Positions 8,560 through 28,252 are shown, counted from the stretch's first letter. The stretch: 64,000 bases of DNA from Salisapilia sapeloensis CBS 127946 (GCA_023334545.1 JAADVB010000081.1:5734-69733), one strand, 5' to 3'. The notes: generated from the letters alone by a model not told the origin. Program-made: numbers and translations.

Positions 8560-10200
8560 ACGATAAAAACAATTAGACTTGCATCCATCCCTAGTGCTTC
8601 TTGGTGAGTTGCCGTAAAAATTTGGAGGTGCAGGAGATAGGAAGCGATTCTCGGCAAGTAGAGAGACAAGGGATACAGACAGCTCCCTGGATGTGAAGAT
8701 ACATGGACCAAACCACGGATGCAAGACGCAGCGCTGCTGAAAATTTCCAAGAGATGCTTGTGCACTGGATAGGAAGCACGTTCAAGTTACTGTCTAGGAA
8801 GGCATGATAATTTCCATGGGTATTGCTCGGTTACTGAAAGGCCGAGTTAGATACGATACGAACATGTGCAGCGTAAGCGTCCAGAGGGTATGGAGGACAT
8901 GTCAATACTTCAGAATGCGTGCGCTACACTCCGAGTTACCCGGCCGATTTTTGGATACGGAAGTTTGCAATGAATCAAGTTGAACTTGGAGGTTGCATAC
9001 GCTACGTGCATCTGAGTGTATGTCGACAATGCAAGCGATATTTTCATGATGAACACGGTGAATTCGAATCGAGTATGGAAGCTGCTTGCTTTTCTCTGTG
9101 CTGTATACTGTCTGCCGGAAGCATCTCATATCGGTATTTACAATTCCTTATCGATGACGACAATTTTCGCACGTAAATTTTTGAAGGCAGTCTACCACAA
9201 CAGTGCACTGCCGTGCGCACATATCATGCCAAGGTTGTGAAGAACATACAATCGTCAGCTGGCATGGTCGAGGAGGACGCAAGGTTTAGATCTTGAGACT
9301 GACCGGCCAGCCTCCGAAACGACGCTCGGCTTGTCACATGGCGTCCATATATGCGCCGCATCATCTTTATCTTTTAGGCAGAATCGTACGAGATGCAATG
9401 TGTTTCACAGGAAGGCTATTTCATGTGGTATAACGTGTTGTACTACCTTGATCGTGCGAGTTCGCTAGAACCTTGTGCAAGTACCATCTTCTATCTCCAC
9501 TTCGAAATGATCGCTCCATTTTCTACCTCGCGACGTTGTACCTGTATAAGATCGATTGGTAGCCATAACGATTTGGACCTTGCGTGCACTTGATGTTGCC
9601 GCATAAAGATAGGTGGTGGTGTTGACGAAAACAACGCGCATCGTCGGCAATGCAGTTGAAGCTTGAAGCAAGCTTTTTTGAACGCATGTTTCTGCCCGGC
9701 TTCGAGTGTCGTCGGGAGGTGATGAAGCTCGTACAGCCAACGATAGTCGTGTCAGCACTTCGGCTTCCACCGTCGTTGCATCCTGCACGATACTTGTAAA
9801 TTTTTTAATTGACGTGACCGTGGTGGTATCCAGCTGGAAGTAAATAGCGAATCTTGAATGGCCATGCGCTGGTTGCCACAAAGTGGGTTCATGGCCAGTC
9901 AGTGGTTGCAACAGGGTTTTGGTTTCGAACAGCGCGATGTAAGGTACGACCACGAGGCAATGATTGCCATTGGTTCGACGAAACTACACGTACGCCCGTT
10001 CCGAAGATACAGCACGTGCTCATCAATGAGTGAAGACGTGAAGAAAGAGCTTACGTGGTAGAAAGAATAAGAGTGGAAGGACGTCTCAGCTGGCGCGAGG
10101 CACTGGCTGTGCGAAATGTTGAATTTCAAACTGTTGAATTTCAAGTGATTTTTTGCAAAAGCCAGCAACACATCTCTATTCCAACATCTGCAGACTGTCC
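8560..10200 (-). CDS. Putative multi-exon hypothetical gene; boundaries approximate
   Basis: Donor GTAAGC near 10057 and acceptor GTGTAG near 9990 join an upstream exon in frame to the 162-aa ORF 9465-9953. No recognisable domain, and the downstream exons are unresolved. Confidence 0.35.
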
Positions 10201-23075: not shown

Positions 23076-23966
23076 GTCCAGAGTTTGTAAATTAGGGAAA
23101 TGATATCCAAGGGAACCAAGCGGCTTTCAAACGGACGGCATGCATGTTGTATGGACGTGAGGGATTACACCAATCTTGTCACTTCAAAGTGGTAGTACGA
23201 TGTATTGATATGCAATTATCGAGTTTCTAATGGCTTGAAGGTGCAAGTACCTTGATGGAGAACGTTCACGATGTAGTTGCCACGTTGACCGGGCGTTCGC
23301 TTCGATATCATATGCAACGACTTATTGTGGATACGACAGAAGCTCCATACGCCATAAAAGTTTTGGCACATGAAGTACCAAGGGTGTCCTCGTCCACGGT
23401 AGAGTGGCTCTTGGTGGTAGAAGGTCTCGATTGGAAGGACGCATCGAGCTGTACTGGACATCTTTATAAGACCGGTAGAGAGACCAAGGGCGATGCGCAT
23501 TCGAGCCGGATAGAAGCAATCCAACATTAACAACTGGGTGCACTTGTGTCAAACACTATCACTACCCTTGCATGGAAGCGTCCGAGTATACATGATTCGC
23601 TTCCTTCTCTCTGTACGCCAGTCACTTAGGTCCAAGACCTAATCCAGGTGTATGTCTTCCTACTCAGAGTTGACATGGTATCGAATCTGATGTTCTCGAA
23701 GGTGGTTTCATCAACTATCTTCACGTCTCTCGTCTCGATTAGAAATAGCGAAAGGCAAGGAAGATGCTATAGCACACACGCCAACTTGCATCAGACCAGA
23801 GAGTATTTCGAACGTATAGCCCAAAGCTCGAAAAATCGACTTTGACGTCGTCTCAAAACTTTTCGCACAAGCGCACGCCACTTCCGTCGCCTTGTTTATG
23901 ATACTGACGCCATTACGCCGGGAGCGCCGGCGAGAGGGCAGTCTTGCCTTCATGATACTCAGAGGC

Positions 23967-24746
23967 ATGCACACGTCCCCCACCGCAGTCCCCACCCGCG
24001 GCTCGACCATCGTCGGCTCGCAGACCTTCTCCGGGTTTCACGGACGCAGCCCACTCTTCTCCGCCACTTCAACTACCATATCGCCCGCTTCGACCAATGC
24101 GAGTCGAACGCGGTCCTGGCAGTCGCTATTTGACGCGCCGGACGACCCGGCTGGTCGCTACCGGCATCGACGTCATGGCGCCCATAGCGCCAATGCTGCA
24201 CGCGGCATTGTCTCGCGCAATCGCTTCGACAGCCTCGACGACGATTCGGATATGAACGCTGTAGGTCCATCGCCACTTGAGTTAGCTGCAATACAATCGC
24301 AGCGAAAGCCACCAAATAACGCGCGACGGGCGCGGAGACGTAGTGCAACGGACCAGAGCAATCAGCTTGCACCAGCAAAGTGCTCGAGCTTGATGGTCGC
24401 GAGTGTCGAAGCCGTGCCATCAGACGTCCGTGCGCACGCCGAGACGCAGGACGCGAACGAGAATGGTACATCTGCAGGTGGCTGGGTCCGTGGGTCACCA
24501 GCAGAAGTCCGATGGTCTGTTTTGGACACCTCGATACAAACCGTTCGGTTGGATGTCTGCAATGCCAAGTGGGATGTCCCGACGACAATCTCGACGGAGG
24601 CATCAAACGATGGCACTTTTCTATGGAAACGAGTGTATTGGGGCATGCCGATCACGGACGGATATTATATAAACGTCTATGATGCAACGGAAGGCAAAGA
24701 GTTACGTCTACTCGCGACAAGTGACTACTTTCGTGTCGTTCGTTAA
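23967..24746 (+). CDS. Hypothetical protein with a disordered N-terminus and a C-terminal beta-sandwich-like domain
   Basis: 284-aa ORF; C-terminal AEVRWS...GTFLWKRVYWGMPITDGYYINVYD...SDYFRV has an alternating beta pattern. Confidence 0.6.
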   Translation: MHTSPTAVPTRGSTIVGSQTFSGFHGRSPLFSATSTTISPASTNASRTRSWQSLFDAPDDPAGRYRHRRHGAHSANAARGIVSRNRFDSLDDDSDMNAVGPSPLELAAIQSQRKPPNNARRARRRSATDQSNQLAPAKCSSLMVASVEAVPSDVRAHAETQDANENGTSAGGWVRGSPAEVRWSVLDTSIQTVRLDVCNAKWDVPTTISTEASNDGTFLWKRVYWGMPITDGYYINVYDATEGKELRLLATSDYFRVVR

Positions 24747-24853: not shown

Positions 24854-25855
24854 TTAAAATGTCTTCGGCCGGAAGCGCTGGAATGAACGTTGGAGCTGCT
24901 CGCCTTGTTGCACGGCCTCGGCGATCTTGGTGTCCTGCTCTTCCATCATCTCCGCCTTGGACGCCACGTCCGCTGCTTTCTCGATCGGAACTACGATCAC
25001 GCCGTTCGCGTCGCCACGGACGATGTCGCTGTTCCGGACGACGCAGCCCGATACACTGATGGGACACCCAACGTCCGCGACGGTCGTGGCACCGCGCTGG
25101 CCGTGAACAGACGTACCTTTGGCGAACGCTGGGAAGCCCATGGTGCATATCTCCTGGACATCGCGCACGCGACCATCGGTGACGACACCCGCGACGTTGC
25201 GAGCTTTTGCTGCCGTCGCGAGTAGTCCGCCGAATACGCCGGTGGTGCTACCTTCGGGCGCACTGATGACGATGACTTGACCCATCTCGGTCGTGTCAAT
25301 GTAGTTAAATGGTAGCTTCCGGACGGCAGCGCCCTTGGCAGGAAGCACTTTGACCGTCAATGCCGGTCCGCAGATATTCATAGACAAAGGGTTTTCATAC
25401 CCTCGGATTAAATCTACGTCTACGAGATGTCCTTCAATTTTAATGGACGCCATGGCGTCTGCAATGGCACATGTCGATAGCTTGGAGAAGCGCAGGAGGA
25501 GATCCGTATCGAGATCATCCGTCTCGAGGAAACCTACAACGAGTTAATATAAACTACGTGAAAACTACGAGAGTAATTTACTTGGTAAAGCGAGTTGCGC
25601 CGAGGCGTCTTGCAACGCGCCTTCGGATGTCATGGGTGGATTTGCACTGCGCTTACTTGTCTTTTGGTTGCTTACAAAGTTCGGCATGCAGCCGCCGAAA
25701 CGAAGGTGCTCGGCTAAACGAGTCGCGTTCGCCGCGTACTGCTTTTGACACTTTTTGCACTCGTACCGGACGAGGTTTTTCCCAGACTCGATACTATCTT
25801 CCGTCGGCTCGATGCGTGTGAAAAAGTCGTAGACGTTCGAGGGTTTCCGTCCCAT
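24854..25855 (-). CDS. BED zinc finger fused to an RraA-like / 4-hydroxy-4-methyl-2-oxoglutarate aldolase domain (317 aa); intron 25534-25581
   Basis: Exon 1 has VYDFF...ECKKC...LAEHLRFGGC (BED). A 48-nt GT-AG phase-1 intron follows. Exon 2 has LSTCAIADAM...GPALTV...GVFGGLLATAA...GVVTDGRVRDV...VRNSDIVRGDANGVIVVP (RraA family). Exon lengths 274+680 = 954 nt, in frame. Confidence 0.8.
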
Positions 25856-26072
25856 ATCCTCGGCACCACGCACGTCAACTAGCTGGTCGTCCACACTTGT
25901 GCGTGATACTTTCGCGTAGTTTTCTCCGCCTTTCGTTTCTTCCCAACAAATTGTGTAACTTATACTTGTATGCAATGTTTCTCGAAGGTACAAATAACCA
26001 ACACAGCCGAAAGAAAAGAATTTGGATAACTTCCTAAAAAAGCTTGTTTTTGTCTAGCTTTAAATCAAACGC

Positions 26073-28190
26073 TTAATCCACCTCTTCCATCGTGCTCTCC
26101 TCTTCCTCGCCCTCAAGCGGAGGCAAGTCGTCCATGTTCTCATCCGCAGCATCATCATCGTCGTCGATGCTCAGACCGAGCTTAATAAGACGGTGGATAC
26201 GGTTCGCGAACGTCGTCGGCTCATCGAGGCTGAAGCCAGACGTCAGGAGCGACGTGTCGTAAAGCAACCAGATGAGATCCTTGACCGTCTTGTCGCTCTT
26301 GTCGGCCTCGGCCTTTTCACGAAGCGCCTTAATGATCGGATGGAGCGGGTTGATCTCCATCGTCTTCTTCGACGTCATGTACTGCGACGTGCTGCTGTCA
26401 CGAAGCGCCTGCGCCTTCATGATACGCTCCATGTTGGCAGACCAGCCGTACTCGCCCGTCACGAGTACGCACGGGGACTCGACGATACGGTTCGAGATCT
26501 CGACCTTCTCGACCTTGTCGTCCAAGACCTCCTTCATGAGCTTGGTAAGACCCTCCGTAGCGGCCTTAGCCTCCTCGAACGACTTCTTCTCGTCCTCGGT
26601 TTCCTCCATCTGGAGTCCTTCCTTGCTCACCGAGATGAGCTTCTTGCCCTCGTACTCCTTGAGCTGCTGGACGGCGTATTCATCGATAGCCTCGACCATG
26701 AACAGCACCTCGTAGCCCTTCTTCTTGAGCTTCTCAATGAACGGAGACGTCTCGACCGCCTTCTTGGATTCACCCGTGACGTAGTAGATGCCAGGCTGGT
26801 TCTCCGGCATGCGCGAGATGTAGTCGTCGAGCGACGTCATGTCCTCACCGCTCTTGGTCGAGTGGTAGCGGAGGAGCTTGGCGATCTTGTTACGGTTCGT
26901 CGAGTCCTCGTGGATACCGAGCTTAAGGTTCTTGCTGAAGGCCTCGTAGAACTTCTTGTAGTTCTCCTCGTCTTCAGCGATTTCAGCGAACATCTCGAGG
27001 CACTTCTTGACCAAGTTCTTCTTGATCACACGCAAAATCTTGTTCTGCTGGAGCGTCTCACGCGAAATGTTCAACGGCAAGTCCTCAGAGTCGACAACAC
27101 CCTTGACGAAGGACAAGTACTCAGGCATCAAGTCCTCGCAGTTGTCCATAATGAACACACGACGGACGTAAAGCTTGATGTTGTTCAGCTTCTTCTTTCC
27201 GCCACCTTCAAACATGTCGAACGGAGCGCGCTTCGGCGTGTAGAGGCACGCCTTGAACTCGAGCTGACCTTCAACAGAGAAGTGCTTGACGGCCATGTGC
27301 TCCTCCCAGTCGTTCGTGAGCGACTTGTAGAACGAAGCGTACTCGTCGTGCGTGACGTCCTCCGGCTTGCGCATCCAGATCGGCTTCTGGTCGTTCAGGT
27401 GCTGCCAGTCGTGCGTCACCTCCTGGATCTTCTTGGTCTTCTTCTTCTTCTCACCATCTTCGTCCTCATCAACTTCCTCAACCTTAGGCTTGTCGTCCTC
27501 TTCCTTCTCGTCTTCCTCCTCTTCCTCATCGTCAGTCACCTCCTTCTCTTCGGTCTTCTCGACGTAAAGACGGATGGGGAAACCAATGAACTCGGAGTGC
27601 TTCTTGACGAGGTCCTTGAGCTTGCGCTCTTCAAGGTACTCAAGCATGTCCTCCTTGAGCTTGAAGTCAATGCGCGTACCACGCGGGATGCGCTCGCCCT
27701 GGTCCGGGGTGATCGTGAAGGAGCCACCAGCGGCAGACTCCCACACGTACTGCTCGTCGTCATTGTGCTTGGAGTGGACGACGACCTTGTCGGCAACAAG
27801 GTAACCAGAGTAGAAACCGACACCGAACTGACCGATCATAGAGATATCAGCGCCAGCGGAAAGCGCTTCCATGAAGGCCTTGGTGCCAGACTTGGCAATC
27901 GTACCGAGGTTGTTGATCATGTCGGCCTTGGTCATACCGATACCAGAGTCCTGGATGGACAAAATGCCGTTGGCCTTGTCCGGGATGATCTTAATCTCGA
28001 GGTTCTTGTCAGCGTCAAGGACGGACGGGTCCGTAAGCGACGCGTAACGGATCTTGTCGAGCGCATCACTTGAGTTACTGATGATTTCACGGAGGAAAAT
28101 GTCCTTGTTCGAGTAGAACGTGTTAATGATCAGACTCAAGAGCTGGTTGATGTCCGCCGAAAAGGCGAAGGTTTCTGCTTCCGCGCTCAT
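26073..28190 (-). CDS. HSP90: Cytosolic heat shock protein 90
   Basis: [41 protein letters not shown]-terminal MEEVD; intronless with strong GC3 bias. Confidence 0.99.
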
Positions 28191-28234
28191 GTTTCTCTTG
28201 TTTCGGTTGAAAATGCGCGCTTGAGGTGTCCGCG

Positions 28235-28252
28235 GCAACTATGGAAATGACT
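28235..28252 (-). promoter_or_regulatory. Oomycete-type INR+FPR core promoter of HSP90
   Basis: Minus strand AGTCATTTCCATAGTTGC resembles the GCTCATTYYNCAWTTT consensus and lies about 45-60 bp upstream of the ATG. Confidence 0.6.

Follow-up and report, generated by a model that had tools for sequence, protein, structure and literature searches.

A 64,000-nt stretch of Salisapilia sapeloensis CBS 127946 (GCA_023334545.1 JAADVB010000081.1:5734-69733; hereafter the window, in whose numbering all positions are given) carries on its minus strand two adjacent open reading frames, the first encoding a BED zinc finger and the second an RraA-like domain. This arrangement raises the question of whether the two frames are separate genes or the exons of one, and, if one, how old the union of the two domains is and what a protein so composed might do. 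The evidence presented here makes it very probable that the locus is a single spliced and expressed two-exon gene, the Salisapilia orthologue of a conserved oomycete BED-RraA protein, with its two-domain architecture intact. The elements on which this reading relies are the following.

25582..25855, minus strand: exon 1, coding part (ATG at 25855-25853; 274 nt, i.e., 91 codons plus 1 nt)
25534..25581, minus strand: intron (48 nt, phase 1, GTAAAT...TTAAC...TTGTAG)
24854..25533, minus strand: exon 2, coding part (680 nt including the stop codon at 24856-24854)
25451..25453, minus strand: sole ATG of the RraA frame (residue 27 of the exon-2 product, within the first RraA helix; not a start codon)
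24992..25474, minus strand: RraA-like / HMG-CHA aldolase-type domain PF03737, full length (profile 1-152 of 152)
25856..26027, minus strand: 5' untranslated region to the limit of contig coverage (the contigs end at 25992, 26018 and 26027, positions that are not mapped transcript ends), abutting the 3' end of an HSP90 gene

Gene structure and splicing

Exon 1 encodes the BED finger and the first portion of a linker, with an N-terminus (MGRKPSNVYDFF) matching that of the orthologues, and reading of the sequence from 25855 to the 5' ends of the contigs (25992-26027) revealed no upstream ATG. The end of the linker, the RraA-like domain and a set of C-terminal helices are encoded by exon 2, whose frame from 25533 onwards reads (S)FLETDDLDTDLLLRFSKLSTCAIADAMASIK... 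to the stop codon. At the junction exon 1 ends in ...ASAQLALP and exon 2 begins with FLETDDLDTDLLLR, and the predicted joined product has, by arithmetic, 317 residues. The intervening 48 nt hold a TAG in frame with exon 1 and a TAA (25546-25544) in the RraA frame, the latter closing that frame upstream of the ATG at 25453. Since a Pfam profile search of the exon-2 product places the beginning of PF03737 seven residues before this ATG, the N-terminal RraA helix lies upstream of the only available start and the BED exon is needed to supply one, as the initial annotation had argued. Each exon product was analysed separately, and inferences about the full-length protein were drawn from natural uninterrupted reading frames of relatives.

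Splicing was followed in contigs assembled from four public runs (X1-X4) representing three samples of one study. In every contig crossing the site 25582 is joined to 25533 with exactly 48 nt skipped, the skipped segment ending in CT..AC on the plus strand and hence in GT..AG on the minus strand, and the contigs show no mismatch or other difference from the window sequence. The in-frame, phase-1 joining of the two exons initially proposed from sequence is thereby borne out by an exact skip in all four runs, and no separate BED and RraA messages occur among the contigs spanning 25581/25534. The RNA nature of these runs is itself an automated guess, which tells against this reading; they were accepted as RNA because contigs break between the HSP90 and BED-RraA genes in three of the four runs, because the depth of adjacent HSP90 and BED-RraA contigs differs 6- to 13-fold, and because assemblies amount to ~15 Mb per run as compared with a 22.4-Mb genome. 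We take the 25582|25533 junction as transcript evidence, as DNA would behave otherwise. Contigs drop rare variants, so that a minor intron-retaining isoform is compatible with them, and transcript ends are not mappable from such data.

This room for a minor retained isoform is the basis of an alternative in which the locus would yield two products, a BED-only peptide from intron retention (translation of an unspliced message would run for 96 residues to the intronic TAG) and an RraA protein initiated at the ATG at 25453. We consider this highly improbable, given that the spliced form is found in every contig across the site, that relatives carry both domains within one reading frame, and that a start at 25453 would delete residues 19-25 of the first helix, which belong both to the Pfam domain and to a modelled trimer interface beside R123/D124. 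Readings of the locus as a pair of genes, or with initiation at the internal ATG, were rejected because all contigs are spliced, a single frame exists in relatives, and the Pfam domain begins before that ATG. In terms of annotation, the internal ATG should not be taken as the start of the RraA reading frame, nor the BED reading frame as a gene of its own.

The BED finger and the age of the fusion

25688..25840, minus strand: BED zinc-finger core (residues 6-56)
25759-25757 (C33), 25750-25748 (C36), 25708-25706 (H50) and 25690-25688 (C56), minus strand: zinc ligands

The BED signature is complete, comprising VYDFF, C33-x2-C36 and H50-x5-C56, and is recognized as zf-BED (PF02892) with 20.9 bits against a gathering cut-off of 20.6 (E 3.7e-4, profile positions 1-40 of 44), while orthologues P0037, P0060 and P0067 bear a precomputed match to the same family. 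Across 20 aligned BED regions C33, C36, H50, C56, L47 and L51 do not vary, and V8 and Y/F at 9-12, which make up the N-terminal aromatic motif, are nearly invariant. An AlphaFold2 model of the exon 1 product exhibits a core of two short strands (residues 30-33 and 39-41) and a helix (residues 44-53) with predicted local distance difference test (pLDDT) values of 82-91. Its top Foldseek match in the PDB is the BED domain of ZBED1 (2CT5; probability 0.96, E 0.04, template-modelling score 0.38-0.46, a weak match), and ZBED2 and ZBED3 are also among the matches. The region is basic, with 13 K/R to 7 D/E in residues 1-69. Because synonymous sites of the window are saturated against every relative available, no window-specific ratio of nonsynonymous to synonymous substitution (dN/dS) is reported, and selection was judged by the Nei-Gojobori method from the proportions of nonsynonymous and synonymous differences between the window BED and four relatives (pN 0.19-0.25 and pS 0.77-0.98) together with ratios among less diverged relatives (dN/dS of 0.06-0.21 for BED, 0.065-0.10 for RraA and 0.17-0.42 for the linker). 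The BED exon, for which the initial annotation had considered possible decay, is under purifying selection and is not decaying; both domains are constrained.

A search with the exon-2 product returned 69 oomycete proteins with E 4e-36 or better, the best of which are 310-385 residues long and start with MGRKPSNVYD[YF]F; several orthologues are auto-named 'BED-type domain-containing protein' in UniProt. Fused orthologues are found in Lagenidium giganteum, Pythium oligandrum, Globisporangium polare, Albugo laibachii, many Phytophthora, Plasmopara, Bremia, Peronospora and Peronosclerospora, those of Lagenidium and Pythium being 78-82% identical to exon 2. No named protein from Saprolegnia or Aphanomyces was retrieved with exon 2 or P0100 as query, in a word-based search that cannot prove absence, and the family is apparently restricted to oomycetes. 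The same order of BED, variable linker, RraA-like domain and C-terminal helices is seen in Ps132793 (P. sojae), Pr79676 (P. ramorum), Poli38472_007463 (P. oligandrum), BBO99_00000963 (P. kernoviae) and P0016 (A. laibachii). The window protein shares with the fusion orthologues the MGRKPSNVYD[YF]F start, the CCHC ligands and 73-82% identity over the RraA exon. It differs in having a 5-residue insertion in its BED (TEDSIESG region), which is 61-67% identical to orthologues of the standard type and 31-43% to divergent Phytophthora paralogues, and a short linker containing a 48-nt intron where four relatives have an open frame.

These four relatives, in which BED, linker and RraA form one uninterrupted frame, are P. 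oligandrum (331 residues), G. polare (343), P. kernoviae (339) and the divergent metagenomic P0100 (289). A linker motif, A-[SQ]-L-A-[VL], precedes the [ML]L[DE]xE..D.DLLLR helix in an order shared with Lagenidium P0001 and the open frames L009, L014 and L015; Lagenidium and the uninterrupted frames read ...ASLAVP...MLETEIALDTDLLLR, in the same order as the exon ends of the window. In the AlphaFold2 prediction for the natural P. oligandrum frame the BED (residues 7-50) and RraA (114-331) regions are folded, and pLDDT falls below 50 for residues 60-113. The linker is thus poorly conserved and, judging by such models, probably disordered. Some deposited gene models for these relatives deserve comment. 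In P. oligandrum P0005 (L009:6001-7057) a deposited 3' intron swaps the conserved C-terminus for an unrelated tail, while the uninterrupted frame (L009:6001-6996) gives the conserved ending ...QQGEPLQRSLQRFRSKNV, so that the 3' part of the deposited model is probably erroneous. The deposited G. polare (L014:5001-6032) and P. kernoviae (L015:5001-6020) models splice out stop-free, in-frame linker segments of 81-84 nt, at different positions in the two species, which may be either optional introns or predictor artefacts.

The initial annotation knew of no description of this domain combination. It is, however, listed as 'BED finger | Demethylmenaquinone methyltransferase' for Ps132793/Pr79676 in Table S1 of Morris et al. 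2009, PLoS One 4:e6133 (PMC2705460), and orthologues already carry the automatic BED-type name. This catalogue entry was the sole match of a literature search, which found no published functional study of a BED-RraA protein. Demethylmenaquinone methyltransferase, a name also attached to several exon-2 matches and to PDB entry 1J3L, is an old name of the RraA-like family. The window gene is therefore a further copy of a known, catalogued and functionally unstudied oomycete fusion.

How the finger was acquired is a separate matter. According to the initial annotation exon shuffling had joined a candidate domesticated transposon domain to a metabolic enzyme at this locus. Its observation that the gene lacks a transposase domain and flanking terminal inverted repeats (TIRs) stands, since a Pfam search of the exon products detected zf-BED and RraA-like domains only (no transposase, DUF659 or hAT dimerisation domain) and an inverted-repeat search found no TIRs bracketing the BED exon, but only 14-35 nt matches (74-93%) inside coding sequence. 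The proposed origin fares less well. An exhaustive phmmer search with exon 1 against 1.84 billion representatives gave only 12 matches, of which six belong to the BED-RraA fusion family and the others are weak (E 1e-7 to 4e-4), so that this BED subtype is found almost only within the family. Its nearest counterparts outside, in a hAT-related protein combining three BEDs with DUF659, are 36-39% identical over ~41 residues (at best 39% over 41), and on this sequence comparison the finger could plausibly descend from a transposase only by a remote and old event. With ZBED and hAT/DUF659 BEDs (2CT5, P0106, L012) the window finger shares the Cx2C...Hx5C pattern and the N-terminal aromatic motif, and with P0106 also a Y-x-x-N-A-T-R-x-x-x-H-L helix; the window gene differs from these proteins in lacking TIRs as well as any transposase, DUF659 or hAT dimerisation domain.

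The intron itself is no evidence for exon shuffling, because the fusion is intron-independent in four relatives and the window intron falls within the disordered linker. Nor is a recent event supported. Recent shuffling or domestication at this locus was rejected given that the fusion is common to Albugo, Pythium, Lagenidium and Phytophthora, that TIRs are absent, and that the finger is unlike that of the BED+DUF659 protein encoded in the same genome. Judging from its distribution, the fusion is old and conserved across oomycetes. The BED+DUF659 protein is a 749-residue uninterrupted frame on another contig (L012:1550-3799, minus strand, equal to G000:C1200), hAT-related and transposase-derived, whose BED is unrelated to the RraA-fused one (E 1.8). 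A further frame of 741 residues (L013:1097-3322, plus strand, equal to G000:C1233) gave a weak BED match in the genome scan and matched no Pfam family at E 0.01 or better.

The RraA-like core and its possible function

25160..25165, minus strand: codons of the Arg-Asp pair, aligned to Arg-123 and Asp-124 of 3NOJ, within G-x20-R-D-x2-E

The match to PF03737 is strong (113.1 bits against a cut-off of 24.5, E 1.8e-32), and by sequence the PDB relatives of the domain are 3K4I, 5IR2, 3NOJ (P. putida HMG/CHA aldolase), 5X15 and 2C5Q (yeast Yer010c). In the P. putida enzyme Arg-123 is essential and stabilises the enolate, and Asp-124 is a metal ligand (PMC5065237). Pairwise alignment to 3NOJ places Gly, Arg and Asp of the window protein opposite Gly-101, Arg-123 and Asp-124 and shows R-D-x2-E to be kept, in agreement with the retention of catalytic Arg/Asp anticipated by the initial annotation; these three positions are kept in nearly all family members. 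A helix, AE-x-[IM]-E-[ED]-Q-D, is also conserved in the family. The P. putida F1 enzyme and Yer010c (of the aldolase/oxaloacetate decarboxylase class) belong to the same fold family and share with the window protein the ~220-residue long form with C-terminal helices, the G/R/D equivalents and a trimer (predicted for the window), although the sequence relation is remote (E 7e-16) and the activity of the window protein is putative; an N-terminal zinc finger is present in none of the solved relatives. E. coli RraA (P. aeruginosa homologue 3C8O; E 5e-5 to the 162-residue form) has the same Pfam family and core fold, but is of the short ~160-residue form without C-terminal helices. E. coli RraA inhibits RNase E, a role that is not transferable to an oomycete because RNase E is bacterial.

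Modelled in three copies, the exon-2 product is predicted to assemble into a trimer, with an ipSAE of 0.93 compared with 0.16 for the best control. Of 30 proteins solved as pairs of one chain 21 attained the mark, and of 23 solved as single chains none did. Separate runs of the model share at least 85% of contacts, at pLDDT of at least 88. In this model residues 19-25, encoded before the ATG at 25453, pack on R123/D124 and residues 140-144 of the neighbouring subunit, and it is because of this position beside the R123/D124 pair that a protein started at 25453 would be expected to be non-functional. A six-frame search of the 22.4-Mb genome found a single RraA-like locus, which is the fused gene; any RraA-type chemistry in the organism must therefore come from the fused protein.

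Taken as a mechanism, these features suggest an RraA domain that would form a homotrimer with active sites at the subunit interfaces. With the Arg/Asp pair kept, the core would most likely bind, and probably turn over, a 2-oxoacid, its chemistry presumably being that of a divalent-metal-dependent pyruvate aldolase or oxaloacetate decarboxylase. Each subunit would carry a basic BED finger on a flexible tether of ~40 residues, giving three putative nucleic-acid-binding fingers per particle, which would most likely place the enzyme or ligand-binding core on DNA. This picture of a trimeric RraA-type 2-oxoacid core with three tethered BED fingers, probably on DNA, is put forward tentatively and at less than even confidence, drawing as it does on sequence comparison and modelling. 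Several observations weigh against it. Asn-71, His-75, Thr-145 and Lys-147, the pocket and phosphate-site residues of the P. putida enzyme, are unmatched in the pairwise alignment, and the equivalent of Glu-199' is ambiguous (Met-196 stands opposite, with Glu-197 and Glu-198 adjacent), so that the substrate may differ. The trimer score may stem from the model's memory of solved RraA trimers, in which case it shows likeness and not binding. The Pfam score of the window BED is marginal, the structural match of the modelled finger is weak (E 0.04), and some BED fingers bind proteins rather than DNA, the ZBED3 entry 9L4J being among the structural matches. Finally, a few fused copies from Peronosporaceae have lost Arg or Asp (P0030, P0101), so that what is conserved in the fused form may be something other than catalysis.

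These losses are best seen in the context of the family tree. A maximum-likelihood tree of the RraA part gathers all fused proteins, including that of the window, of Albugo and the divergent P0100/P0110, in one clade (Shimodaira-Hasegawa-like approximate likelihood ratio test, SH-aLRT, 92). Unfused paralogues of 220-225 residues are restricted to Peronosporaceae and lie outside the fused clade, and none from Pythium, Albugo or Lagenidium is among the named exon-2 matches. Since the base of the tree is unresolved and the outgroup branch long (1.8), it allows no inference on whether the ancestral form was fused or unfused. The fused Peronosporaceae clade sits on a long branch (0.3, support 100), and substitutions in the G/R/D motif are confined to fused-clade Peronosporaceae proteins (P0030, P0101, P0047, P0055, P0056; for example, R to Q in Plasmopara P0030 and D to Q in P0101), the unfused paralogues having none. 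In sequence terms this hints at a relaxed catalytic constraint once an unfused enzyme was available, although cases are few and gene-model errors possible, and the split between fused and unfused forms in Peronosporaceae may represent subfunctionalisation. In Phytophthora there are further fused paralogues whose fingers are divergent (MESGNVYDYY..., MGGSRRSNVWEYF...), some of them on the same contig. Such paralogues were noted in Phytophthora oleae, P. citrophthora and P. capsici (P0060-P0062, P0066, P0067), and in one of them 6-8 residues are inserted between the Cys pair and the His. A single contig of P. oleae holds three fused genes together with an unfused one, with nearby tags (V7S43_009238, 009244-009246).

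The tree also bears on what the finger contributes. In one alternative, which corresponds to the metabolite-sensing regulator that the initial annotation proposed beside a chromatin-tethered enzyme, the protein would be a ligand-responsive transcription regulator in which RraA serves as a trimerisation and 2-oxoacid-sensing module and BED as a sequence-specific DNA-binding domain, catalysis being secondary or dispensable. The basic BED region, conserved as strongly as the enzyme domain, is consistent with such a role, as is the finding that where an unfused paralogue exists the fused copy lies on the long Peronosporaceae branch and is the sole form to have lost G/R/D residues; for P. sojae against P. 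ramorum the RSD, at 0.42, is moreover high within the 2009 table (PMC2705460). Yet no RraA-like locus other than the fused gene was found in the Salisapilia genome, and the fused gene keeps a full R-D-x2-E, which argues that enzyme chemistry is still selected, and no unfused counterpart accompanies it in the named matches from Pythium, Albugo and Lagenidium. The motif losses are few and could reflect gene-model or sequence errors, and a DNA motif, a target gene and a nuclear signal are all putative. We regard this alternative as possible but on the unlikely side. Alternatively, the protein could be an ordinary soluble metabolic enzyme whose N-terminal finger acts structurally or as a tag for protein-protein interaction and plays no part in nucleic-acid binding. 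An intact catalytic motif in the only RraA gene found in the genome would suit this well, BED-type fingers can mediate protein contacts (ZBED3, of the SCMC complex, is among the structural matches), and the length and disorder of the linker point to independent modules. Among characterised BED fingers, however, most bind DNA, and the window finger is basic and conserved far more tightly than the linker, so that a mere structural or protein-interaction tag appears fairly improbable.

Between a tethered enzyme and a ligand-responsive DNA-binding regulator the data do not discriminate. A more elaborate proposal would make the family an oomycete-specific trimeric DNA-binding regulator whose output is set by the 2-oxoacid (pyruvate or oxaloacetate) bound or turned over by its RraA core, and which in Peronosporaceae became purely regulatory after an unfused enzyme paralogue arose; in this full form it is speculative and quite unlikely.

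Genomic setting and implications

26073..28238, minus strand: HSP90, given as context (stop codon 26073-26075, 217 nt upstream of the BED ATG)

The HSP90 gene initially placed ~220 bp upstream on the same strand is thus 217 nt away by measurement. HSP90 contigs end at 26016-26036 and BED-RraA contigs begin at 25992-26027 (together window 25992-26036), and in run X1 one 7.4-kb contig covers both genes, which says nothing about a single transcript. Either the promoter of BED-RraA is extremely compact or overlaps the 3' end of HSP90, or there is some read-through transcription. On the other side a convergent reading frame of 284 residues (window 23892-24746, plus strand) ends 107 nt from the RraA stop codon; contigs over BED-RraA continue through this region to below 24600, and the 3' ends of the two transcripts may overlap.

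Linkage to HSP90 was rejected as a conserved trait, as Pythium, Globisporangium and P. kernoviae have other neighbours. Upstream lies an ADH_N gene in two of the three named relatives checked and in the metagenomic relative, and an unnamed 190-residue gene in P. oligandrum; downstream an RRM gene is found in all three named relatives. The order of a BEACH/WD40 or ADH_N gene, BED-RraA, an RRM_1 gene and an ion-channel gene is kept in Pythium, Globisporangium and P. kernoviae (L014, L015, L009, L010), and the divergent metagenomic copy also adjoins an ADH_N gene, where the window instead has HSP90 upstream. P0111 (481 residues, P. kernoviae) resembles a merged RraA+RRM gene model.

The Salisapilia gene opens no new category. 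It belongs to a family that pairs a DNA-binding-type finger with a metabolic enzyme fold and has stood in catalogues since 2009 without functional work, being present as a single copy in the small Salisapilia genome and expanded in tandem in Phytophthora. Whether its members are tethered enzymes or metabolite-responsive regulators is answerable by ordinary assays in transformable Phytophthora. If the latter were true, these proteins would constitute a direct link from enzyme to chromatin without a characterised counterpart.

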